IMG/VR virus record: IMGVR_UViG_3300023199_000204
Span: 252,474 to 316,473 of that record
Reading direction: 5' to 3' (one strand)
Length of the DNA: 64,000 nucleotides
A program made the translations under genes and the position numbers. Under the pieces are notes generated by a model. That model searched no databases. It saw only the letters and a program-made list of their open reading frames with translations, and was not told where the DNA came from. Below are positions 3,187-64,000 of the stretch, one piece after another. Positions within the stretch are counted from its first letter, which is position 1. Each line of letters begins with the position of its first letter.

Positions 3187-3286
3187 GGAGCAGTAAAAGA
3201 GTTAGTAGAACAGCTCGGAACGAGAAACGAAAGCTCAGCCTTCTTAGGAAGTGTGGAAAATGTAGGTTCGAGTCCTACCTGCTCCG
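3187..3286 (+). ncRNA. Non-canonical tRNA-like RNA (100 nt)
   Basis: Perfect GGAGCAG/CTGCTCC acceptor and GTAGG-TTCGAGT-CCTAC T arm; no canonical anticodon arm. Confidence 0.65.
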
Positions 3287-3779
3287 CAAAGGACAAGGGA
3301 ATCATAGAGGAGGCTTCTATGAAACATTTAAATCAAGAAAAAATGAAAGTTGTTAGTTTAGAAACTAATGGTAAGAACAAAGAAGTTATTTCTAAAGAGC
3401 GAGACTTTGGTGCCCGAATAGGGGCTATTATATCTTATGTAGATTGGAAACCTATATCAAAATTAGTCAATAGAATGTTAGGAAAAATAAATGGCATTAC
3501 AAAATCCAAGTCATAAATTATACGAAGAAATGTATAATAAAAAAGAGCATATAAAAAACTATGCTAAGTCAATATCAAGATATTTTGGATTAGGATTTTC
3601 TTTATATGGCATATTAGATAATCCTAATAGACTTGTATATGATTTAGATTTACATTTAACGGCTTTAAGTGAAGAAAAAGTTCTATTCATAGTAGATTTA
3701 ATATCTGAAAAATTAGGAGATTTTCTAGCCTCCCCAGACAAAGAGGCAGAAAAGAAATAAAAAAGAGAAATATAAAAGT

Positions 3780-3851
3780 AGGGCACGCTCGGGGTAAGCT
3801 GGCTGGTCTCCAAAACCGACTGAATGCTGGGTTCGAGTCCCAGGTGCCCTG
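3780..3851 (+). tRNA. tRNA-Trp(CCA)
   Basis: AGGGCAC/GTGCCCT acceptor, CTCCAAA loop, canonical T arm, short D arm. Confidence 0.85.
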
Positions 3852-5293
3852 AAAAGGAATGTTAGAATGCTTATAAAAACACTGTTTAAAGATCCACATC
3901 AATTTGTTTTAAATATATTAAGAGATCATAATTTTAAAGAAATGGATAAAAGTGATGCTCATAGCTACCAAAATTTTAAATGTTGTAGATCATTTAAAAA
4001 AAATAATATAATCGTTAAAATATGTGATGCTGTTAAAGAACTTTCTATATTGGCAGTGGCAGAGGGCAAATGTAGTGAGTATGTTTCTTACTTTAATAGG
4101 AACTTTTATTCAAACGTAAAGCAGTTAATAAATAAATATGAAAATTTTTAATATAAACTCTAACGCCTCTATTTTAGGATATAATAAAGCGGTGTCTATC
4201 GCAAAACAATACGGATTTTATTTGTCTTCTAAGACATTGTGTTGTAATACTTTCGTTAATATTTATACTTATGAAATAGTTAAAATCTGCGAAGGTTTTG
4301 TCGAAGCATTCTTTATAAATCCTAGAAATGATCAATATTATCTCGATGATAAAGATTCATTTAAATCTTTTGAAGAAGAACTTAAAAAAAGAGGATTTGT
4401 AAATGAAAGTTAGTTCGCTTAATACATCTTCTTTTTATCCATCTATAACATCTAATGGTATAAAAAATACTAGAAGACTATTAACTAGCTTTGGTTTTAA
4501 AAGAAATGAATACGTATTAATGGTAAGTGGTGAAGAGTGGGAGTATAACTATCGCGGCCTGAGAAAATTTGCGTTTCTATATTATAATCCTCTTATAGAA
4601 TTGAAAATTATGAAGCGTACATTCTACATTATGAAATTTGAAGAAAGATTAAATCTTGTTAAGTATTTAAGAGAAAGTTATGTTTAGATATTCAAATAAA
4701 GAACTTAAGTCTTTAATTGAAACAGAAGGGTTTTGGAAAATAATTGGTCTAATAGATATAGATACAATATCTAATAATAAAGTTAAGAAACTTATTTTAA
4801 AAATGAAAAAGCTTGAAAATAATATTTATAGAAAACTGAATGAAAATTAAAAAAATAGAAGCAGATAAGCAAATTATAATAGATGTTAGAAAAAAATTAT
4901 TAAGTCTTGGTTTAAAGAGAATTAAAAATTCCCCCAGCGAGCCTCCTTTTTCAAAAGAAATATGGGAAGGTGGAATTTATCTTTATAAAGATCCACCAGA
5001 TCTTCTGGTATTTGAAGCTCTATTTTATAGAATTAATATACCAGAAGAACTACAACAAGCTTATATTCATTTAGAAAAGGTGTTTAAATAATGAAAATTT
5101 ATATTGTTAAAGATATAATAAAAATATATGGAAAATCATTTAATACAATTAAAAATTTCACTAGTAAAAAAATGGAAAATTTATAAAGGAACTCTTAAAT
5201 TAATATGACATTTAGAATTGGAGATATATATCGAACAGAATCTATTCCAAGATATATTGTCGTCTCTTCAGAGTTCTGTTTAATATAGAATAT

Positions 5294-8528: not shown

Positions 8529-8603
8529 CTGGGCGTGTTCTAGTCTGGCTAAGATTCCTCATTTGGAATGAGGAGATCGTAGGTTCAAATCCTGCCGCCC
8601 AGA
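8529..8603 (+). tRNA. tRNA-Pro(TGG)
   Basis: CTGGGCG/CGCCCAG acceptor, CCTCA-TTTGGAA-TGAGG. Confidence 0.92.
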
Positions 8604-8637: not shown

Positions 8638-9027
8638 ATGAAAACATTGGTAGTTAATGTTCGCGACAAAAACTATGATGTATATATTGGTAGAGAAGGC
8701 CGAGGCGAAACAGGTTACTTTGGTAATCCTGTAATAAGAGGTAAGGTCTGCACAGTGTGTGGAAATGTACATCCCAATAGAGGCAGCACGCTGCCTTGTT
8801 ATGAGAAATACGCACGCGAGCGACTATCTGATGATGCTGATTTTTGTTCTGCCGTACGCAAACTTAGGGGCAGAGCGCTCGGATGTTTTTGTGCGGGTAA
8901 CAAGGTTCTAACAAAAGACGACCACCCTCACTGTTGCCATGGTCAGGTATTAGCAGAATTAGCCGAGGAGCTAGAGGCTGCTGTAGAAAAGTTTGTAGAA
9001 CTTGGTGGACTTGATGAAACACCTTAA
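8638..9027 (+). CDS. DUF4326-like protein
   Basis: YDVYIGR, FGNP, LRGRALGCFC and CHGQVL motifs. Confidence 0.75.
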   Translation: MKTLVVNVRDKNYDVYIGREGRGETGYFGNPVIRGKVCTVCGNVHPNRGSTLPCYEKYARERLSDDADFCSAVRKLRGRALGCFCAGNKVLTKDDHPHCCHGQVLAELAEELEAAVEKFVELGGLDETP

Positions 9028-9513
9028 GGAGATTATATGGAAAAAGTAGAACTAGACCTACCAAAGCTGGTTGAAGCTGATGATTATCACGAATTTAAAT
9101 GGCTAGAAAAACATCTTCAAAAGTTAAATAAAGAATTATATGTTGAAGAATTGACTCCATATTATGAAACAATAGACTATATAGCTATCATCTATTATAA
9201 AAACAAAGATGCTAAATATCATCAGTTAAAAGCAAGTGTTGAAATGGAAGTTAATAGTGGATAAATTTATTTTAAAAAATTTGAAAGAAATTAAAAGATC
9301 TTTAATAAAGGACCAAGAATTTACTATAAAAGTATCCGAAGAAGCAATTCACCTAATAGATGAAATTTTAAAAAATAAGGCATTGTTCAAAAGACAAACA
9401 AGAAAATTGCTAAATAGACTTGAAAAATTAGATAATTGTGTAGATATTGGAGAAATGATATATTATCAAGATTATAGTTAAAAATCTATCAATTAAATTA
9501 TATTAGGATTACT

Positions 9514-9609
9514 ATGATTGTTTTTAATCTAAACCTATCAAATTTAGAACACGCCCATAGCGAAGAGCACGGACTCTCTTCAGCGGCAGGGAGAGGTGTA
9601 ACTATTTAA
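9514..9609 (+). CDS. Putative attenuator leader peptide 1 (MIVFNLNLSNLEHAHSEEHGLSSAAGRGVTI)
   Basis: AGGA RBS, 31-codon ORF not in the ORF track, directly upstream of antiterminator/terminator. Confidence 0.7.
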   Translation: MIVFNLNLSNLEHAHSEEHGLSSAAGRGVTI

Positions 9610-9611
9610 TA

Positions 9612-9667
9612 GGTCTGGGATTATAATATTTTACGAAGCCTGGGCCATTTGGTCTGGGCTTTTTTTA
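9612..9667 (+). promoter_or_regulatory. Attenuator 1: antiterminator GGTCTGGG (9612-9619) and intrinsic terminator (9636-9667)
   Basis: AAGCCTGGGCC-ATTT-GGTCTGGGCTT plus T run; GGTCTGGG is duplicated just after the leader stop and can pair with the 5' arm. Confidence 0.75.
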
Positions 9668-10154
9668 TTATGAGAAAGAGGCTAAATGAATAAATTAAGT
9701 ACCGCTACCAAAATGGATGAAGTTATGATAAAACTCCTTGACGGCATAACTTTTGAAGGAACAGATATAACGAACGATCAATATAAAAATTTACTCAAAT
9801 ACTATGAATATGATTTAGATCATTCAGATACTATGTCTAAACTGTCTGCTAAATTGACAGATGAAAAATATGAAAAAGAATGTAGCGAATGGGAAGAAGA
9901 AGAAGCAAGTAATAATATATATTATAATGTTCCTAAACAAAAAAAACCTGATATAGAGAATATTTTAAAAGAAACAAAAAGGTTTTATGAGGCAGGAAAT
10001 ATAAAAAATATAATGAGAGAGGCGAGTCACGACGGACGTAGAATTATGGCTTTCATATCAAAGTTTCTTGAAAAAGGAGAAGACCCTGTTAAATTAATAG
10101 CAGAGTGTATGAGTCAAGTGGGATTTGATGTTCAGTTAGAAGAGTAAATTAAAA

Positions 10155-10229
10155 GCTCCTGAGAGCCATTAGGAAGGCTATCAGATTTCCAATCTGACTA
10201 TCGTGCGGGTTCGAATCCCGTCAGGAGCT
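10155..10229 (+). tRNA. tRNA-Gly(TCC)
   Basis: GCTCCTG/CAGGAGC, TCAGA-TTTCCAA-TCTGA, U73. Confidence 0.88.
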
Positions 10230-13888: not shown

Positions 13889-14641
13889 ATGTCTAAAAAG
13901 AGAGAAGATATAGATAAAAAGAAAGATATAATAATTTCTATGCTTAAATCAGGAATTTCTAAGGCAGAAGTCTGTAGATATCTTAAGTGTAAATATATAA
14001 CTCTAAAATCTAGATTGGATAAATGGGGATGTAACATAAAAAATACGCATAGAAAAAGTTTCCCGAGACTCAATAATAGAAAACACGTATCTGAATATTT
14101 ACATCACGACAGTAATATTAATTCTTTTAAGCTCAAAAAAAAATTATGGCAGGATGGTTATAAAGCAAAATTTTGTGAAGAGTGTGGAATATATAAATGG
14201 CGTGGAAAACCAGCACCTTTAGAGTTAGATCATACTGATGGTTACAAATTTAATAATTGTATAGAAAATTTAAAGATTCTGTGTGCAAACTGTCACGCTA
14301 AAAAATCAACTAATGGTGGGAAAAATAAAGGTACTTATAAAATTAGCTCCGTCTCTCAATTGGCAGAAGAAACGCGCTTAGACCGCGTACGGTGTGAGTT
14401 CGAATATCACCGGAGCTATAATAAAAAATCTAAAAATAAATGTATTGATTGTAAAAAAGAAATAAAAAAAACTAGTAAAAGGTGTAAGAAATGCTTTTCT
14501 CTCAGTTCAAGAAAAATAGAATGGCCTCCTGTAGAAAAAATACTAGAAATACTAAAAGAGGAAAATTATACAAAGCTTGCTAAAAGATTAGGAGTGACTG
14601 ATAACGCAATTAGAAACTATTTAAAAAGAAACAATAAATAG
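13889..14641 (+). CDS. HNH endonuclease with N- and C-terminal HTH-like regions; contains an embedded tRNA
   Basis: CEECG..LELDHTDG..NN..NLKILCANCH; C-terminal CxxC pairs and LAKRLGVTDNAIR. Confidence 0.85.
   Translation: MSKKREDIDKKKDIIISMLKSGISKAEVCRYLKCKYITLKSRLDKWGCNIKNTHRKSFPRLNNRKHVSEYLHHDSNINSFKLKKKLWQDGYKAKFCEECGIYKWRGKPAPLELDHTDGYKFNNCIENLKILCANCHAKKSTNGGKNKGTYKISSVSQLAEETRLDRVRCEFEYHRSYNKKSKNKCIDCKKEIKKTSKRCKKCFSLSSRKIEWPPVEKILEILKEENYTKLAKRLGVTDNAIRNYLKRNNK
14345..14418 (+). tRNA. tRNA with Leu(TAG) anticodon and short variable loop, inside the HNH ORF
   Basis: AGCTCCG/CGGAGCT, ACGCG-CTTAGAC-CGCGT, GTGAG-TTCGAAT-ATCAC. Confidence 0.8.
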
Positions 14642-16491: not shown

Positions 16492-17658
16492 ATGAAATAT
16501 ATAATATTAAGTGATCTTCATTTAGGGCACAAAGGGATCCAGAATAATGGATTTGTATCTTTACTTTCTAATATTCCAGAGGGTGCGGATGGATATGGCA
16601 AGAGTAAGTTAGACAGTTTTTCTACAGCCATAAAAGATTTTTGTGGAGAAGATAAAGCAGTTTTGATTTTAAATGGTGATTTATTAGAGCTTTCATTAGC
16701 GACAATGAGAGATGCTCTTGACAGCTTTTTAGATGTGATTGCTACAATAAAAGACAATGTAAGTAAAATAATATTAATTGTTGGAAATCACGATCATCAT
16801 ATTTGGTCTTTACATTCAGAGTATAGCAGGTCATTAAATCATTTACTTTCTGGAGATTTGCCAGCAGTGGGGACGGCTTATAGGACAACGATATTTGCTG
16901 AGAAAGCACATCTTTTAGATCCGCTTATTAAAAAACAAATTGACGAAAACATTGACTTTAAAGTATCATATCCTTCTTTACGGCTCCATTTAAATAATGG
17001 AGATGAACCAGTTTATTGTTATATTACACACGGTCATTTATTGAGTGGATTATATAATTTAACTTCAAGAATACTAAAACCTTTTGCTATTGGTAGAGAA
17101 ACAGAATATACAATTGCCGAAGTTAATTCTGCCTTAATTGAGTTTATGTATTGGTCAGCAGGAGAAATGGGCGATGGGATGGGAGTTGATGGGATCCTTG
17201 AGGCAATGTACACGGACTTAGAAAAGGGAAAGAGTTCTAAAATGAAGGAACTTCTTGTTAATTTATCTAATACATTGTTTCCAGATGGAGTTTTATCGTT
17301 TGTCCCAGATGTTTTGGAAAGAAAAATATTTAGTTGGCTAGCAGAAAAGATGTCCAAGAAACTATCAAAGGATAGAGATAAGCCCATATCCTCAGTTGAT
17401 AGATACGCTTCTTTGGAAGATACTAGAAATTACGTTAATGATTGGACTAACAATGTTGTTGATTTATCACCTCCATATAAAAGAATGATTTTTGTTTCTG
17501 GTCATACGCATCGTGCTGACGAGTTTAATATTAATGAAACTGTTAAATATTATAACACTGGATCGTGGTTATTAGAGCCAGCCCATCCTGAACCAGAGTC
17601 AAGACTCCTTTTTATAGAGGACGGAGAAGAACTGAAAATTGAGTTTAAGGTAATATAA
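16492..17658 (+). CDS. Calcineurin-like metallophosphoesterase
   Basis: SDLHLG, NGD, GNHD, THGH, GHTH and NTGSW motifs. Confidence 0.88.
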   Translation: MKYIILSDLHLGHKGIQNNGFVSLLSNIPEGADGYGKSKLDSFSTAIKDFCGEDKAVLILNGDLLELSLATMRDALDSFLDVIATIKDNVSKIILIVGNHDHHIWSLHSEYSRSLNHLLSGDLPAVGTAYRTTIFAEKAHLLDPLIKKQIDENIDFKVSYPSLRLHLNNGDEPVYCYITHGHLLSGLYNLTSRILKPFAIGRETEYTIAEVNSALIEFMYWSAGEMGDGMGVDGILEAMYTDLEKGKSSKMKELLVNLSNTLFPDGVLSFVPDVLERKIFSWLAEKMSKKLSKDRDKPISSVDRYASLEDTRNYVNDWTNNVVDLSPPYKRMIFVSGHTHRADEFNINETVKYYNTGSWLLEPAHPEPESRLLFIEDGEELKIEFKVI

Positions 17659-18535: not shown

Positions 18536-18850
18536 ATGCGAAAAGCAAAAAGAAAAGTTTTTTAAAAATATCTGGAAAGACGACAGACGGAAAGTTAGTA
18601 TATAGTGGTCTTTATGAACTTAGGAATACTTACGGAATTCCATTAGATATAAGTATTCCATTTATTCACGATAATGATGGAATTCCAGACTGGTTTAATA
18701 TATATGAAGAGGCTTTAAAATATAACCTTCCATATGATAGATTAAGAAATAATTTAAGTGTTATAATAGTTGATCTATATAGTGAAGACATATGTAATTC
18801 AATATTATTTAAACTTGATAAAGTTAATGAAATTGGATTAGTTAAAATAA
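18536..18850 (+). pseudogene. Frameshifted ORF resembling a fragment of alanyl-tRNA synthetase
   Basis: Frame starting 18559 reads SGLYELRNTYGIPLDI, like the AlaRS motif GxxxFxLYDTYGFPxD; the ATG at 18536 is out of frame at A/T runs. Confidence 0.5.
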
Positions 18851-22469: not shown

Positions 22470-24371
22470 GAGAAGCTGTGTCGCGAATATTAATGATTTT
22501 AGGAATTATTACGCTAGCTACAGCGTGTGGGTTTTTTGGTCAGATTGAAAAAGTAAGTATTAAAAATAAGGTAGGAGTGGAATTTAGAAATGTTTCTACT
22601 ACTGATAGTAATGAAAGATATAGTTTAGGAACAGGAATCGATATAAAATCAACAACTGGATACGGAGCAAACATCTTTTATAGATTTAGAGACACAAATT
22701 GGAGTGTTTTTGAACAAGAGCACGGGGTGTTTTTTGGATTTAATGTTCCTTTGTATAAGAAAAAGTAGGTAATTAAATGAAGAAAGCTTCAGGATTATAT
22801 GATGTTAATACAATTATTAATATATCATCAGAAAATTTAATGAATGACGGATTTGAAGAGTGGGTGCCCTCTCGCCCAATTGGAACATTTGGTTTCTTGT
22901 CGAGATGTAAAAAAGCTTGGATGGTTTTTACAGGGAAGGCAGATGCTCTTATATGGCCTAAAGGACAGTGATGAGAAAGATTAATAAAGTTTGCGGTAGC
23001 ATTTTAAAACAGTTAGAAATACCAGATAATCTTGAATATTGTTGTGAATTTATAGAGCAACAACTTAATTATGATTGTAAGCAGCACGGTTCGGGATGTC
23101 CAGATATAGGAATTAGATTAACAAAGAATATTGAATTAATGCTTATAGCACCAAATGCTGAGTATATATGTAATTATTGTCCAAGTTGTGGAAAAAAATG
23201 GTCTAAGGAGAGATAATGTTTTATGATTTTAGGCAGAATAATTCTGGAGGTTCTTTTAAAGTAACTGATAGTGTTGGACATTATGTAATAATAGAAGCTG
23301 ATAATGCTCAAGAAGCTAACGAAAAAGCAGAGCAAGTGGGCATATATTTTGATGGTTGTTCAACTGGAAAAGATTGTAATTGTTGTGGAGACAGATGGTA
23401 TCCACAATGGGATTCCGATGGTAGTGAAGAACCATCCATTTATGGAGAAAATATAGAAGAATATAAGAATTCAATAAGATATTCTGTTTCAGATGAAGAA
23501 GTAATTTTTGTTTACTATAAAGGCGGACACTCTAAAAAAATAGTCATTGATGTTAAATCAGAAAAATAAAAGACCGAAAAGGCTTTAAGAGATGAGGCAG
23601 ATAAAACTTGGGCAGCTTTTGCTGGGATAAGCTATTGTTATAAAAATCCTGAAAGAATGTATCAAGCTGATTTTTACGATAAATATTATGATGAGTCAGG
23701 CAATAGAAGTATTGAGAAAAAAGGACTTGTAGTTAATAATGATTATAATTATCTCACATTTTCTTCTGATAATAAAGAAGAAGTGGAAGATTTTATAAAA
23801 GGGTATAGAACATATGCTGAGGCAGTTAGAGAGGCTATAATTAATTTATCAGATTTGAACAGAGATGAGTTCAGTAGCAAGGGAGAGAAAGCTTTAAAGG
23901 ATATGCTTTTGAATGCACTGAAAAATGTAATGTCGACATATTCATAATATAAAAACTAAGAGCTGGTATGAAAAGATACAATATAAAAAAACAATTAGCT
24001 TACTATGAAATTTCATTTTTAAACAACAAGAATCTTAATGATTTGATAAATGAATTCAATTCATTAAAAAAGAAGTTCGGAAGAAAATGGAATCTTTCAA
24101 TCAAGTTGGAAGACTCTTATGATAGTTATGAGTCCGAGCCTTCATATAATAGCTTTTGCGTTTATGGTGAAAGATTAGAAACTATAAAAGAAGCAAAGAA
24201 GAGAATTAAAGAGGAAGAGGAATATAAAGCTTTAAGAAAAGAGCAAGCAAGGGCTCGGGCAAAGGAAAGAATAAAGGCTGAAAAGGAAACTTATTTAAGA
24301 CTTAGGAAAAAATTTGAAAAAAAAAATCTTAATTTATATTAATAATAATATATTAGGACAGGAATATAATT

Positions 24372-24491
24372 ATGTCTATATTTAATTTACGCTTGAAATT
24401 AAAATCTATCCAAATTACTGATCAAGTTGATCAGAAGGATAGATGTGTGCGCCAATATAATACCACAAATATTGGAGGCTCAAGCGTATAA
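24372..24491 (+). CDS. Putative attenuator leader peptide 2 (MSIFNLRLKLKSIQITDQVDQKDRCVRQYNTTNIGGSSV)
   Basis: AGGA RBS, 39 codons, N-terminus similar to leader 1 (MxxFNLxL), last codons overlap the antiterminator. Confidence 0.72.
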   Translation: MSIFNLRLKLKSIQITDQVDQKDRCVRQYNTTNIGGSSV

Positions 24492-24553
24492 GACATTAAT
24501 ATTATTAGATGTTTTATCAAGCCGCTTGGGTCAAAAGCCCTGGCGGCTTTTTT
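24477..24553 (+). promoter_or_regulatory. Attenuator 2: antiterminator GGCTCAAGCG (24477-24486) and intrinsic terminator (24519-24553)
   Basis: AAGCCGC..GCGGCTT stem plus T run 3 nt before tRNA-Cys; GGCTCAAGCG pairs over 10 bp with CGCTTGGGTC in the terminator 5' arm. Confidence 0.78.
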
Positions 24554-24556
24554 ATT

Positions 24557-24628
24557 GACGTGCTCCTTGGGACTGAGGGTTAGGCTCTGCAAAAGCTTGA
24601 ATTTGGGGTTCAACTCCCCAGCACGTCT
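24557..24628 (+). tRNA. tRNA-Cys(GCA)
   Basis: GACGTGC/GCACGTC, CTGCAAA loop, U73. Confidence 0.85.
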
Positions 24629-24642
24629 TGGAAATAAAATAA

Positions 24643-24775
24643 GGATGCGTTGAGCAGTGCGGTGAGCTTGGCGGGCTGTGGGGATTGATTAAATGGTAAT
24701 TTTAATGAGTTCGATTCTCACATTCCCAAAACCCCGTGGTCTTCGGGCTTGTAGGTTCGATTCCTACCGCATCCA
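24643..24775 (+). tRNA. tRNA-Tyr(GTA) interrupted in the anticodon by a ~50-nt nested mini-tRNA (24680-24729)
   Basis: GGATGCG/CGCATCC-A73, GCGGG/CCCGT stem, Tyr-type long variable arm; removing the insert gives loop CTGT+AAC. Confidence 0.8.
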
Positions 24776-25879: not shown

Positions 25880-26575
25880 ATAAGGAGAAAGGAATGTCTA
25901 ATAAATAAAAAAGAAGTTCTAGAGGTGTTAGAAAGGTATGAAGAGATTAAAAGTGAAATTAAAGGAACATTCTTAATTTATGCTAAATATTGTGGTATTT
26001 AAGTTTCAGAAATAGTTCATATTGAGGTAAACGAAAGTGAGGTTGAAGTAGAATACACTGAGCCAGGCGGATGTAGCTGTTGCTATACTAGTAGATACTC
26101 TACTTTTCCTATTAGTTATTTATGGGAAGAGAATTGGATTGAAAAGCTAAAAGCTAAGCATCAAGTGGAATTAGCCGAAAAAATTAAAAAGAAAGAAGAG
26201 GAAAAAGAAAGAAGAGAAAGAGAGCAACTAGAGCTGGATAAAAAGCTTTATAAAAGATTAAAAGAAAAATTCGGCTAAAATAATCTTAGAGGCAGATTCC
26301 ACTGGGTGAGTTAATAAGGAAAGTAAAATAATGAATTTCGCAAAATGGTTTAGAGAACAGCAAAAAGACGCTAAGGCTGTAATTAATTTAACAAAACTTG
26401 ATGTCAGAGATGAGCCTTGTCTTACCCTAAAGGGCAATAATAAATATAAAGTTTTGATAACACAAAATACATTTATTTCGAATGTATGTGGAATTTTCGT
26501 TGAAGATGTAAATTATGTATTAATGGAGGCACAAAATGAAGAAACGAAAACGTAAATAAAAATCAGGCAAACTAT

Positions 26576-26723
26576 GCCTCCGTGGTGTTAATGGCTTAGC
26601 ACACTGGATTTTGCGAAAGACATTTGGTATGTAGATGTTAGAGGCAACTCTTTGGTCTAAGTGAGTTCGATTCTCACCTTTCGCGTAATCCATGAAGTGT
26701 GGGTTCGAATCCTACCGGGGCTA
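26576..26723 (+). tRNA. tRNA-Lys(TTT) interrupted in the anticodon by a 73-nt nested tRNA-like element (26613-26685)
   Basis: Outer D and T arms intact, TGGA/TCCA stem; removing GCGAAAG...CTTTCGCG gives loop TTTT+TAA; outer acceptor is one G short. Confidence 0.75.
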
Positions 26724-27641
26724 TAAAATAGATTAGATAAGAGGATTTAGTTAATATTTATTATTAAAAGGAAAGGAAAAAATGAAAAGTAAAATTTTAT
26801 CAGTTGTATTGTCAGTTTGTTTGTTAATTGGAACGGTATTTGCGACTTCTGCCTGTGGAGACGACTTAGTTGTTAATGGAAAAAACATATAAAACCAAAG
26901 GTATTTTTACTCAAGATGAAAAAGACCCTTGTATTAAATATAGTTTAATTGCTGGAAATGTTGCTTGGGCAATTATATTTTTTGGAACAGCAGTTGCTCC
27001 AGTTTATTTTTTTGGATTTTCTTTATGGGAGCCAGCGAGAGTTAAGTCAGAATGCGAAAAGAAATAAAGTCTCCAAAAATAGGAATGGGAGCAACCATTC
27101 AACTTTGGTCAGATAGAATTGCTGGAACAATCGTGAGAATTACAAAAACTAAAAAGACAATCTTTATTCAAGAAGATGCGGCATCAAGAATTGATAGAAA
27201 CGGAATAAGTGAAAGCCAAAGATATGAATATACTCCAAATTCTAAAGGAAATGTATATCGTGCTTCTTTAAGAAAATATGGAAGGTTTAGAGTATCAAAA
27301 ACCAATGAATTAGTTAGTATTAGAGTAAGACGCAAGTTTTACGATTATTTTTTTTAAGGACATTATGGGAAGATTAAAAGTAGCTAGTTATATTGAAGAG
27401 TGGTTGAAATTAGAATGCCCACACTGTGAAGAGTCAAATTGGCTTCAATCATCATTTGGAGACATATTAGACCCTGATGTTGATGCGATTAGATGCCTAT
27501 CCTGTAAAGAGTTGTTTCTTGTTTGTGAAAGAGAGGAATGGGAGAGTGAAGATAATTTATACATAGAAGATGGAGTGACTGATCCGTCTGAAATAAAAGA
27601 GTTAGATTTTTATAATGAAGAGATTTGGAATGATTAAATAA

Positions 27642-27714
27642 GGGTTTGTGGTGTCAATGTAGCATATTCGCCTCTTAAGCGAAAAGGTGATGGGTTCAAG
27701 TCCCTCCGAGCCTA
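27642..27714 (+). tRNA. tRNA-Lys(CTT)
   Basis: GGGTTTG/CGAGCCT, TTCGC-CTCTTAA-GCGAA. Confidence 0.85.
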
Positions 27715-28386: not shown

Positions 28387-28460
28387 TCAGCTGTCTTCTA
28401 ACTGGATAAGATCCCTGGCTTTGAACTAGGGCAATGTGGGTTCGAATCCCATTATTCCCG
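28387..28460 (+). pseudogene. Chimeric tRNA: Gln(TTG) body with a non-matching 3' acceptor strand
   Basis: D, anticodon (CCTGG-CTTTGAA-CTAGG) and T arms intact, but TCAGCTG cannot pair with TATTCCC-G. Confidence 0.7.
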
Positions 28461-30441: not shown

Positions 30442-30518
30442 ATTCCGATAGTTTAATGGCAAAAACGCCCGCACCCAGCACAATGCGATTTGAAGCGGGA
30501 GATGTTGGTTCGAGTCCG
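30442..30518 (+). ncRNA. tRNA-like RNA with 22-nt expanded anticodon loop and unpaired acceptor
   Basis: GTTT/AAAC D stem, CCCGC/GCGGG stem, GTTGG-TTCGAGT-CCGAC T arm. Confidence 0.6.
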
Positions 30519-30532
30519 ACAGAGTTTGTTGA

Positions 30533-47433: not shown

Positions 47434-48741
47434 ATGTCAGTAATAGCAATGGAAGTAATGGAGGCGTTTGATCATCCAAATGCTGATTCATTAAGAGTTT
47501 ATAAATTTATAGCACCAGGGCAAGCATCAAAAGAGCGTCCACTTCAAATAGTTGCGAATCTTGAAAATGTGTATGAGGTTGGCGATGTCGTTGCTGTTGC
47601 GTTGGTTGGAACTGTTTTAAAAGATGAAACCACTATCAAAAAAGTAAATCTTCGTGGAGAGTCTTCATACGGAATGGCTTTGGGAAAAGTCGATGCCAAG
47701 GTCGGCGAAAATCTTTCTGATAAATATGAGGCAGAAGAGATAAAACCTTCAATGGCAGGATTTATTAAATGGCCGAGCATTTCAGGTTTTCATAATATTA
47801 GAAAATCATTAGAGAAAATAAAAGAATATGAGGGAGGTGCTTTTACTTATCCAAAACTTGATTACAAATGTAAAGTGAAATTACACGGAACGAATTCGGG
47901 TGTTCATTTACATTCTGATGGAACATTTGCTGTTCAAAGTCGTTCAAGAATATTAACTCCTGAGCACGATAATTTGGGGTTTTATAGATGGACGCAGGAT
48001 AGGAAAAATCATTTTGAAAAGTGGGCAAAATCTGCCGGTAGAAATTTAACCGTATTCGGAGAATTTTGTGGAGAGGGAATTCAAAAAGGCGTTGCTGTAT
48101 CCAAGATAGAGAGGAAGATATTTGTTGTTTTCGCAGTCCAAGTTGATGAAAATACACTAATAACCGATCCAGAAGAAATCAATGGTTATGTTTTGGAACA
48201 CGAAGATATAAAAGTTTTACCTTGGTATGATGCTAATTTCTTCATTGATTATTCAAATACTGATTTGTTAAGGGCTGTTATTAAGGATATAAATGCTGAG
48301 GTAGATAAAGTAGAAAAAGAAGACCCTTGGGTAAAAGAAGTTTTTGGAGTGAGTGGTATAGGCGAAGGGTTAGTTTTTTATCCTTATAAAGAATATGATA
48401 GGGATAGAATATCTTTATTAATGTTTAAAGCGAAAGGAGAGAAGCATCAGGTTGCTGTTCAAAATAAGCCAGTCCAACTAGATCCAGAAGTATTAAATTC
48501 AATTAATGAGTTCTCTGATAAATTCATTACAGAGGCAAGACTTGAACAAGGAGTTGCTGAAGGTTGTGATGGCAAGTTGGAAATGAAAATGATGGGTAAG
48601 TTTATTAAATGGATTATGTCTGATGTTAATAAAGAATCAAAAGACGAATTGGAAGCTTCGGGACTTAAATGGAAACAAGTAGGAAAAGAAGTTTCAAGTC
48701 GAGCCAGAAATTGGTATAAACAAAAGGTGGAAGAAATATAA
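47434..48741 (+). CDS. Rnl2-family ATP-dependent RNA ligase with N-terminal tRNA-binding OB-fold-like domain
   Basis: Motif I KLHGTN, QSR, FGEFCG, EGLVF, FKAK; N-terminal HPNADSL..IVAN..GDVVAVA..LRGESSYGM as in Trbp111/PheT-type domains. Confidence 0.85.
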   Translation: MSVIAMEVMEAFDHPNADSLRVYKFIAPGQASKERPLQIVANLENVYEVGDVVAVALVGTVLKDETTIKKVNLRGESSYGMALGKVDAKVGENLSDKYEAEEIKPSMAGFIKWPSISGFHNIRKSLEKIKEYEGGAFTYPKLDYKCKVKLHGTNSGVHLHSDGTFAVQSRSRILTPEHDNLGFYRWTQDRKNHFEKWAKSAGRNLTVFGEFCGEGIQKGVAVSKIERKIFVVFAVQVDENTLITDPEEINGYVLEHEDIKVLPWYDANFFIDYSNTDLLRAVIKDINAEVDKVEKEDPWVKEVFGVSGIGEGLVFYPYKEYDRDRISLLMFKAKGEKHQVAVQNKPVQLDPEVLNSINEFSDKFITEARLEQGVAEGCDGKLEMKMMGKFIKWIMSDVNKESKDELEASGLKWKQVGKEVSSRARNWYKQKVEEI

Positions 48742-49143: not shown

Positions 49144-49446
49144 TTTATGAAAGGAGGTTCCTATATGGTAAGTATGAAAATAGAATATCCTATTAATAAG
49201 CCAAGTGAATTTGGAATAACAGGAAATGTAAAAAAAAGGAGTGGGCGACAGTTATAGGAGAATATTTGAGAACTCAGATAGGAAAAGGAAAAGATATTTC
49301 AAAACCAAATACAGATAGTGATTTGTATGTAATTGATATTAACTTAGATCTAAGCTATGATACTTTTTATTGTAAAAGCAATTGTGGAAATTTAGGTCTT
49401 GAAACAGGTATTTTGTTAGATGTTATTCAAAGAATTGAGAAATAAT

Positions 49447-49491
49447 AAGGAGCGAATGGCTTGGATAAAAGCCACGCTCCTTTTGTTTTTT
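49447..49491 (+). terminator. Intrinsic terminator after the last tRNA of the second array
   Basis: AAGGAGCG-AA-TGGCTT/AAGCCA-CGCTCCTT followed by TTGTTTTTT. Confidence 0.75.
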
Positions 49492-49559
49492 ATAACTATC
49501 ATAATTGCTGTCGTTACGGCAATAATAGTTCATATAATTATTAACTGAAAGGAAATAAA

Positions 49560-50069
49560 ATGAAAAAAGTATTATGTTTAATTGTTGTAACCGTTTTCTT
49601 ATCAGCCTGTGGTTTACCTTCTGGAACAGTCCATGTCCTCAGTGGAGATGACGAATATATTACAGATCACGGAATGTATGTTTTAGTTGAAAATGTTAAT
49701 AGACCAAGTAAAAGTACAGTCGAAAATTGGACAAATGAAGCTTTTATGTTTTGGTGGAAGTTATATCCTAAGCTTGGAAGATGTATGATAAATAGAATAT
49801 ATATCGTTAATGCTCATTTTTGGGATCAAAATTATATTCCATATGAAGGAACAGCTGTCGGAAATGGAAAGGTTGCTGGGCTATCATATGGAAATAATAT
49901 AGATATATCATATAGTTATACTCTTGAAGATCCTTATTTAAAGGTAAGAGGTGTTTTTATACACGAATTATCTCATCAGTTGCTAACTTGTTATAAAAAC
50001 AGACTTCCTCCTGAAGACGACCATTCTTTAATGAAGCGAACAGGAATGGATGAATTCACTGAATGGTAG
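49560..50069 (+). CDS. Lipoprotein with HExxH motif
   Basis: Lipobox LSAC after a hydrophobic signal; FIHELSH. Confidence 0.55.
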   Translation: MKKVLCLIVVTVFLSACGLPSGTVHVLSGDDEYITDHGMYVLVENVNRPSKSTVENWTNEAFMFWWKLYPKLGRCMINRIYIVNAHFWDQNYIPYEGTAVGNGKVAGLSYGNNIDISYSYTLEDPYLKVRGVFIHELSHQLLTCYKNRLPPEDDHSLMKRTGMDEFTEW

Positions 50070-59220: not shown

Positions 59221-59574
59221 GGGGACGAAATGGATTCGACAGAGGCGACAAAGATAAATAAAGCAAGTAAGGGAATGTCTATTTTCTCTTTGAAAAATAT
59301 AGGCAAAAATAAGTAACGAAAATTACGCACTTGCTGCCTAATTAGGTAGCACATCTGAAGTTTTCTCTCACTCGTGACGGAACTTCAAGATGTCAAATGA
59401 ACGAGGTAATAATTATTCTTTTAGCGATTGGGAATAATTATGAAATTTTAATTGCTTCGTAATTTAGTAGCTTGTTTATGGGCGACTTTATTATTAAATT
59501 AAATCATAAACTAAACTTGTAGATGTCTTTATTATTGAGTTTCTGGACCCGGTTTTCGAAGGCCGGCGTCTCCA
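59221..59574 (+). ncRNA. ssrA: tmRNA
   Basis: GGGGACG-AAATGGATTCGAC 5' end, CGTCTCC-A 3' end with G3:U70, tag frame NENYALAA* at 59315-59341. Confidence 0.93.
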
Positions 59575-59789
59575 AATAAATAAAAGAGAGGAGTTAAAAG
59601 ATGAAAGAAGTGAAAATATTTGAATTTTCAGCAGCTAATTTTTCTAAATTGGAATCTGATATTAATGAAAAAATACGTAATGGATATAAATTAATATCAC
59701 TTTTGCTTTTATATCGGTCAGAAGACCCCTTAAAGGGAAATAAATATGAAGCCGTTTTTGAAAAACCATGAACTTAATAAATTATTAAC

Positions 59790-63671: not shown

Positions 63672-64000
63672 ATGATAATTAAAACAATTAATAATAAAAT
63701 AAATGTTGTAAAAAAAAATAATCTAATAAAATATTATAGAAACGGAAAACTTCATCGGACCGATGGTCCAGCAGTAGAGTGGGCTAATGGAACTAAAGAG
63801 TGGTATCAAAATGGAGAGCGTCATCGGACCGATGGTCCAGCAATAGAATATGCTGATGGAACTAAAGAGTGGTATAAAGAGGGAAAGCTTCATCGGACCG
63901 ATGGTCCAGCAATAGAATATGCTGATGGAACTAAAGAGTGGTATAAAGAGTGGTATAAAGAGGGAAAGCGTCATCGGACCGATGGTCCAGCAATAGAATA
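63672..64000 (+). CDS. Repeat protein with 22-aa LHRTDGPAIEYADGTKEWY units (truncated by the window)
   Basis: Open frame from ATG 63672; 66-bp tandem units, with one 12-nt internal duplication. Confidence 0.8.
   Translation, partial: MIIKTINNKINVVKKNNLIKYYRNGKLHRTDGPAVEWANGTKEWYQNGERHRTDGPAIEYADGTKEWYKEGKLHRTDGPAIEYADGTKEWYKEWYKEGKRHRTDGPAIE

Follow-up and report, generated by a model that had tools for sequence, protein, structure and literature searches.

A short open reading frame in the genome of an uncultured giant phage is probably the leader of a ribosome-mediated transcription attenuator, which ends at a strong intrinsic terminator ahead of a block of 12 tRNA genes. A second, paralogous unit precedes another tRNA block in the same genome, and the codons of each leader correspond, strongly for the first and only marginally for the second, to the tRNAs encoded behind it. 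The phage may therefore turn on spare tRNAs when translation slows, although this function is inferred from sequence and folding alone. Specific sensing of the downstream tRNA set is plausible but remains tentative.

The stretch analyzed, here called the window, is the last 64 kb of the 316,473-bp IMG/VR contig IMGVR_UViG_3300023199_000204. Its GC content is 30.5%, and all of its large ORFs are on the + strand, as are the two leader units, the tRNA genes of block 1 and tRNA-Cys described below.

Architecture of the first leader and its terminator

A preliminary description, based on sequence alone, proposed that a 31-codon upstream ORF, an antiterminator strand located 2 nt after its stop codon and an intrinsic terminator together sense the supply of the tRNAs encoded downstream. 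The observation itself is confirmed in every sequence detail. The ATG-initiated ORF spans 9514-9609 (31 codons plus TAA) and begins with the residues M-I-V-F-N-L-N-L. A Shine-Dalgarno-like AGGA (9505-9508) lies 5 nt before the ATG, within a 10-mer, TATATTAGGA, at 9499-9508. As described, residues 11-28 are 17 of 18 Leu/Glu/His/Ala/Ser/Gly, are specified by exactly the codons that had been listed, and the leader carries no Lys, Gln, Asp, Cys or Tyr. The presence of an ORF of this size is not by itself unusual, since about 115 spurious ORFs of at least 25 aa occur per 17.5 kb.

Within the ORF, a GC-rich irregular hairpin (9549-9599; about 55-60% GC) holds most of the Glu/His/Ala/Ser/Gly codons. 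Segment 1 (9525-9543, codons 4-10) forms the 5′ strand of a closing helix that, in naked RNA, pairs with 9604-9623 and so partly sequesters the antiterminator strand. However, this 1:2 helix is weak, with a z-score of −1.36 for the fold of 9510-9625 and a duplex no better than shuffled sequences (P 0.26). Segment 2, GGTCTGGG at 9612-9619, is an exact copy of the terminator's 3′ arm (9651-9658) and can pair with CCTGGGCC at 9639-9646 to form eight base pairs, three of them G-U, at −11.9 kcal/mol. An antiterminator of this strength is not rare if it is allowed anywhere in the leader (P 0.15-0.20), although one within reach of a ribosome at the stop codon is rarer (P 0.02-0.03). The terminator (9635-9662) is a 12-bp stem formed by segments 3 (9635-9646) and 4 (9651-9662), with a 4-nt loop and a tract of seven T residues (9660-9666), and folds at −16.8 kcal/mol.

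The first gene behind the terminator (9686-10147; 153 aa, no family match) begins 19 nt after it, and its ribosome site starts about 10 nt after the T-tract, so that this gene would depend on read-through. Between 10154 and 18926, ARAGORN identifies 12 tRNA genes of exactly the identities given in the preliminary description, which represent 11 distinct anticodons: Gly UCC (two copies), Gly GCC, His GUG, Ser UGA, GCU and GGA, Glu UUC and CUC, Leu UAG, and Ala UGC and GGC. A scan for T-arm motifs found no further tRNA-like gene in this interval. The tRNA genes of block 1 are interleaved with tightly packed + strand ORFs, with no other strong terminator.

A second, paralogous unit

A scan of the + strand for hairpins followed by T-runs revealed only three strong terminators outside coding sequence in the 64-kb window, at 9635, 24520 and about 49450. 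A fourth hairpin, at 1586, lies inside the adenylosuccinate synthase gene. Two of the three terminators carry a leader of the same design, and the existence of a next leader, assumed in the preliminary description, is thus confirmed. The second terminator (24520-24548; −20 kcal/mol, T-run to 24553) ends 3 nt before tRNA-Cys (24557-24628), the first gene of block 2, which runs to the third strong terminator near 49450-49490. It is preceded by a 39-codon ATG ORF (24372-24491) with AGGAA 7 nt upstream.

The second unit (24349-24553) carries the only other exact + strand copy of the 10-mer TATATTAGGA (24349-24358), and its ORF begins with M-S-I-F-N-L-R-L. The shared peptide start, M..FNL.L, occurs in no other ATG ORF in six frames of the window. 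The distances from stop codon to terminator stem are similar, at 25 and 28 nt. The combined DNA motif, comprising the 10-mer and the ORF start, occurs 27 times in the 2.9 million contigs of IMG/VR. Two of these are the leaders described here, while the other 25 are unrelated genes, none of which is a short ORF followed by a terminator. The two units are therefore related by descent or by shared constraint. Only the ribosome site and the first eight codons are conserved between them, whereas the remainder differs in sequence and length, a pattern that fits a leader peptide better than a functional small protein.

Leader 2 folds far better than shuffled sequences, with z-scores of −6.25 for the whole unit and −5.16 for the portion before the terminator. 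Its segment 1 (24388-24396, codons 6-9) pairs with segment 2 (24477-24489, the last codons and the stop) at −13.5 kcal/mol (P 0.005-0.025). Segment 2 (24477-24487) pairs with the 5′ arm of the terminator at −16.9 kcal/mol (P 0.004-0.009, and at most 0.001 if the strand must lie near the stop codon). The start codon of leader 2 pairs with 24492-24497. Leader 1 has the same layout with weaker helices.

Predicted switching between terminator and antiterminator

At equilibrium the full-length RNAs always form the terminator, as in trp, and any switch must therefore be kinetic. We consequently folded transcripts that end before the 3′ arm of the terminator while masking a ribosome footprint of −12 to +14 nt around the P site, an assumption based on established footprint sizes. 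For leader 1 transcripts ending at 9650, the antiterminator forms with probabilities of 0.81-1.0. It forms for every A-site position from codon 1 to codon 29 (0.82-1.00) and collapses to 0.28, 0.15 and 0.00 at codons 30, 31 and the stop. Leader 2 behaves likewise, switching at codon 33 onward. These folds match trp-type logic, in which a ribosome that arrives at the end of the leader in time gives termination, while a delayed or absent ribosome gives read-through.

Neither terminator leaves room for a promoter before the next gene, although internal promoters within the block cannot be excluded. Scans for promoter consensus sequences are uninformative in this AT-rich DNA, with 95 sites found against 87 expected.

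Correspondence between leader codons and downstream tRNAs

We compared each leader with each block by using standard wobble rules and excluding the start codon. Leader 1 covers all 11 anticodon species of block 1, and 18 of its 30 codons are cognate. A match at least this good has P values of 1e-3 (coverage) and 1.6e-4 (count) under a composition-matched null, and of 4-7e-4 and 1-2e-4 under structure-preserving shuffles. Independent draws from gene codon frequencies give P of about 1.5e-4 for coverage, and in-frame windows taken from real genes, start codon included, give P below 1e-5. Watson-Crick-only and expanded-wobble rules give similar answers. Among 27,205 open 30-codon windows in six frames, 0.015% satisfy both criteria, and these represent only the leader 1 locus. 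The other windows that reach either threshold belong to one GC-rich antisense-tRNA frame (11 of 11 coverage) and one other minus-strand locus (18 cognate codons).

The match of leader 2 to block 2 is weaker. It covers 10 of 12 species with 17 of 38 cognate codons, giving P of 0.10 and 0.19 under the composition-matched null and 0.09-0.11 and 0.16-0.20 under structure-preserving shuffles, although the gene-codon null gives P 0.016 for coverage and 0.45% of 20,868 open 38-codon windows meet both criteria. Ten of its codons (Gln, Asp, Lys-AAA and Tyr) correspond to no confidently called phage tRNA, but the tRNA inventory of block 2 is uncertain and sequence beyond the contig end could hold Gln, Asp, Tyr or Lys-UUU tRNAs. 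Three insertion-bearing or partial Gln-UUG-like genes lie in block 2. If these are functional, the four Gln codons of leader 2 become cognate, giving 21 of 38 (composition null P 0.04; top 0.15% genome-wide for both criteria).

Cross-matches sit at chance. Leader 1 covers 5 of 12 species of block 2 with 8 of 30 codons (P 0.83 and 0.73 under the composition-matched null; 60% of open windows do as well), and leader 2 covers 5 of 11 species of block 1 with 6 of 38 codons (P 0.86 and 0.91; 81% of open windows). Random re-partitioning of the 23 anticodon species between the two leaders reaches the observed 22 of 23 with P 6e-4, or 2.6e-3 when isoacceptor groups are kept together. Among contiguous cuts, the maximum score falls at the true position of leader 2 (k=12, 22 of 23 species), tied in raw score with k=14 (22 of 24).

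The preliminary description had emphasized the use of varied synonymous codons, but this is not supported on its own. With the peptide held fixed, synonymous codon choice is not significant (P 0.06-0.18; 0.06 and 0.08 with phage codon usage, 0.18 and 0.39 with uniform usage), and the signal is therefore mainly at the amino-acid level. One suggestive detail is that the Leu codons at conserved positions 6 and 8 are CTA and CTA in leader 1, whose block has Leu-UAG, but TTA and TTG in leader 2, whose block has Leu-CAA.

All of these tests are post hoc, because the hypothesis was formed on the same data. The nominal P values overstate the evidence, and a discount of tenfold or more on those of leader 1 is fair. 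However, three considerations weigh against dismissal: the block boundary was fixed by an independent feature, the next strong terminator; the second leader shows the same direction of effect with chance-level cross-matches; and the architecture recurs in a paralog whose helices have different sequences.

Searches for relatives and known RNA families

No relative carrying the leader was found in any collection searched. IMG/VR searches with flanking proteins returned only the source contig, a GC-richer phage of 34% identity that lacks the leader, and unrelated phages of 64% GC, and a metagenome scan gave the same distant relatives. A search of 5.8 billion proteins recovered only the query's own protein, and two other assemblies of this phage are 99.9% identical to the window. 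A GTDB scan gave one irrelevant partial hit, and INPHARED, searched in near and distant modes, gave nothing. A DNA pattern describing the terminator and antiterminator gave only GC-rich chance hits. The only comparison is thus with the paralog in the same genome, which keeps the architecture with different helix sequences. A third tRNA region, at about 160-176 kb of the contig, has four scattered tRNAs and no leader of this type.

Comparison of the leader with the window by blastn revealed no repeats and only a 13-nt chance match antisense to tRNA-Pro, which argues against a tRNA-derived patch. The paralog was found only through the terminator scan and the peptide motif. Rfam searches at gathering and permissive thresholds gave nothing above threshold for 9300-10200 or for leader 2. 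The best scores were 22.5 bits for PyrR (gathering score 54), 18.4 for the L10 leader (44) and 17-19 for sRNA terminator modules, with E values of 0.1-2 for the best hit, and these only reflect the terminator module. No T-box was detected at E up to 10 in 9300-10200 or at E up to 0.5 over the whole window.

Interpretation and alternative explanations

We favor the explanation that the element at 9499-9666 is a trp/his-type attenuator that gates read-through from an upstream operon into a 15-kb block holding 12 tRNA genes. What sequence and folding establish is that a short ORF with a ribosome site ends 2 nt before a strand able to pair with the 5′ arm of a strong terminator, and that in transcripts stopping short of the 3′ arm this pairing forms unless a ribosome occupies the last two or three codons or the stop. 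The rest is inferred, including any dependence of read-through on leader translation and charged-tRNA supply. In this view, a ribosome that keeps pace with the polymerase would reach the stop, mask segment 2 and permit termination, whereas a ribosome delayed anywhere in codons 1-29 would leave segment 2 free and transcription would continue into the tRNA block. Because the leader holds at least one codon for each of the 11 tRNA species encoded downstream, a shortage of any of them, through starvation, host shut-off or tRNA cleavage, would raise expression of the phage copies, and read-through would fall again once supply is restored.

The interpretation offered in the preliminary description is thus partly supported. 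The attenuator core is probable, and tuning of the codon set to the downstream tRNAs is possible but less than likely on present evidence. Sensing of anticodon nucleases, which had been proposed as an example, is pure inference. A bolder reading, which is more tentative still, is that the phage carries a pair of diverged paralogous tripwires for tRNA supply. Each leader peptide would hold about one codon for every tRNA species encoded behind it, and loss or shortage of any one host tRNA, through anticodon-nuclease defense, starvation or host shut-off, would stall the leader ribosome, open the terminator and switch on that block of replacement tRNAs, with negative feedback once supply is restored. 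In block 2 this would also switch on a tRNA-binding RNA ligase.

Two alternatives are unlikely, each to about the same degree. The first is a generic translation-coupled attenuator, in which the leaders sense overall ribosome speed or availability, for example the timing of infection or host shut-off, and the codon match of leader 1 is coincidental. Its structural logic is the same, and it is consistent with the weak match of leader 2, the non-significant synonymous-codon test and the scattering of single codons rather than runs. However, leader 1 is the single best match to block 1 among the open windows, and both the diagonal pattern of matches and the peak of the partition score at the real position of leader 2 would need to be coincidence.

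The second is that these are ordinary module-boundary terminators, preceded by small paralogous genes that encode peptides with a shared N-terminus, and that upstream operons end there with partial read-through while the alternative pairings have no regulatory role. The three strong terminators do divide the window into functional modules, the antiterminator of leader 1 is not rare if it may lie anywhere, the full-length RNA always folds as the terminator, and small ORFs are common by chance. Against this, conservation restricted to the ribosome site and the first eight codons is unlike that of a conserved peptide, and in both units the antiterminator strand sits exactly at the stop codon. Also, tRNA-Cys starts so close to a −20 kcal/mol terminator that it would be made only by read-through, and the codon match is left unexplained.

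A translation-independent RNA element is doubtful. This could be a structured leader at which a protein, small molecule or RNA sets terminator against antiterminator, or a small RNA ending at the terminator, with the open frame a by-product of a GC-rich patch lacking AT-rich stop codons. The GC-rich hairpin in an AT-rich genome, the high degree of structure in leader 2, which contains perfect palindromes, and the weak similarity to PyrR-site and sRNA terminator modules are compatible with this view. However, no Rfam family reaches its threshold, a 39-codon open frame in AT-rich leader 2 is unlikely by chance, the two leaders share the ribosome site and peptide start but not their structured parts, and the stop codons align with the switch strand in both. 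An arrest-peptide sensor, in which M..FNL.L would stall the ribosome in response to a factor or small molecule as in drug-inducible resistance leaders, is very unlikely, since although the peptide start is the only conserved coding part, a stall at codons 4-8 would leave both the long, structured and very different remainders of the ORFs and the codon match unexplained, and no known family was matched.

Comparison with known attenuators

In the attenuators of amino-acid operons (trp, his, leu, pheA, and the multivalent thr and ilvGMEDA leaders), a short leader ORF is followed by mutually exclusive antiterminator and terminator helices, a ribosome at the stop codon masks the 5′ strand of the antiterminator, and stalling upstream gives read-through. 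The thr and ilv leaders already sense more than one amino acid. Here, the genes that would be regulated are phage tRNA genes rather than biosynthetic enzymes, leader 1 holds 11 codon classes scattered once to three times rather than runs of one codon, its 1:2 helix is weak and its antiterminator short, and there is no sequence homology. The pheM leader of the E. coli pheST operon is a precedent for a leader-peptide attenuator that controls a component of the translation apparatus in response to the supply of charged tRNA, although it senses a single amino acid, is a bacterial chromosomal element and controls a synthetase gene and not tRNA genes.

T-box riboswitches also couple tRNA status to a choice between terminator and antiterminator upstream of translation-related genes, but a T-box binds one uncharged tRNA directly, through a specifier codon and a conserved T-box sequence, without translation, whereas this element has an ORF with a ribosome site. 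In pyrBI-type attenuation the outcome likewise depends on how closely the ribosome follows the polymerase across a leader ORF next to a terminator. However, in pyrBI a closely following ribosome prevents termination, while here, as in trp, an arriving ribosome is predicted to promote it by masking the antiterminator.

Full-text literature searches found no report of a leader-peptide attenuator on phage tRNA genes. Phage tRNA arrays are usually treated as constitutive cargo that adjusts codon usage or replaces tRNAs cut by host defense. A leader-peptide attenuator in front of tRNA blocks would be the first case of demand-driven control of viral tRNA genes, and would extend classical attenuation from one or a few amino acids to an eleven-species sensor. 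It would also provide a compact natural part that reports the supply of many tRNAs at once, and would make directly testable whether and when phages deploy their tRNAs against tRNA-targeting immunity.

Genomic context

The window holds 27 tRNAs identified by ARAGORN and one more found by Rfam (27642-27714, read by hand as Lys-CUU). The first tRNA, Pro at 8529, precedes leader 1, and no tRNA lies in the 8.6 kb before the window. Most other proteins encoded in the two blocks have no family match, but block 1 encodes a metallophosphoesterase (16492-17658) and block 2 encodes an RNA ligase fused to a tRNA-binding domain (47434-48741). The window also holds a tmRNA (59221-59575), which together with the ligase fits, but does not prove, a theme of tRNA and translation rescue. 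The window ends in MORN-like repeats that recur at 170-212 kb.

A second leader unit and additional tRNA-like genes

A second leader unit, paralogous to the first, is present at positions 24349-24553 of the window and comprises a 39-codon ORF, a three-helix attenuator layout and a terminator of -20 kcal/mol that ends 3 nt before tRNA-Cys. The start codon of this ORF pairs with the 6 nt just after its stop (24372-24377 with 24492-24497), an arrangement that would limit translation to ribosomes loaded during transcription.

Beyond the second leader, two tRNA-like genes at 24643-24775 and 26575-26724 have good acceptor stems and T-arms, although their anticodon loops, which by eye read GUG (His) and UUG (Gln), are interrupted by inserts of 50-74 nt. 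Each insert itself contains a T-arm-like hairpin, and both genes are missed by standard tRNA finders. They could be intron-bearing tRNAs, nested tRNA-like elements or decoys. Two further partial tRNA-like elements, at 28392-28454 and 30449-30520, score just below the Rfam threshold (25.4 and 28.9 bits) and both have UUG (Gln) anticodon-loop sequences, with one lacking an acceptor stem and the other having a 22-nt anticodon loop. A tRNA at 27642-27714 that was missed by ARAGORN at default settings is found by Rfam with 41.7 bits; its anticodon loop reads CUU (Lys), and its acceptor stem includes three G-U pairs.

Weak tRNA-like hits also lie upstream of the tRNA region, at 3187-3286 and 3779-3852. 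One of these is 100 nt long with a perfect 7-bp acceptor stem (28.1 bits), while the other is a Trp-CCA candidate that is seen only with relaxed ARAGORN settings. A second, sparse tRNA region was found far from the window, at contig positions 159819-179968 (L023), where it contains Met, Leu-CAA and Met tRNAs and one tRNA found only by Rfam (L023 6376-6451). This region has no leader of the M..FNL.L type.

Genes and sequence features near the tRNA blocks

The 76-nt tRNA with anticodon UAG at 14344-14419 lies inside a 250-aa ORF (13889-14641) that has a weak HNH endonuclease match. Although this tRNA is called Leu, it lacks the long variable arm of bacterial Leu tRNAs. Either the ORF is over-extended through the stop-free tRNA, or the arrangement is unusual. 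The 348-nt gap between the two tRNA-Ala genes (18537-18850) looks coding but is broken across frames after a short ORF that ends in an A/T run, and could be a frameshifted or programmed-frameshift gene. Just upstream of the first leader, a 250-nt stretch of 50-55% GC (8735-8988) lies inside the DUF4326-family ORF (8638-9027). This stretch stands out against the 30% GC background and may have been acquired recently.

Near the end of tRNA block 2, a 435-aa protein encoded at 47434-48741 joins a tRNA-binding domain (PF01588) to an RNA ligase domain (PF09414). It is 33-38% identical to phage Rnl2-type ligases and is a likely tRNA repair enzyme. The third strong terminator (49445-49560) is a two-tier hairpin, which sequesters the ribosome site and ATG of a 31-codon hydrophobic ORF that begins inside it. 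This terminator marks the end of the tRNA region and the start of a module of glycosyltransferase, epimerase and DNA-methylase genes.

A phage-encoded tmRNA (121.6 bits) is located at 59221-59575, outside the two leader-controlled blocks, and the distant relative L002 also carries one. Finally, both the window and the contig end inside a gene of tandem MORN-like repeats (63740-64000), and the same repeat recurs in genes 100-145 kb upstream (contig 170-212 kb, stretches L018-L022), which probably caused the assembly break.
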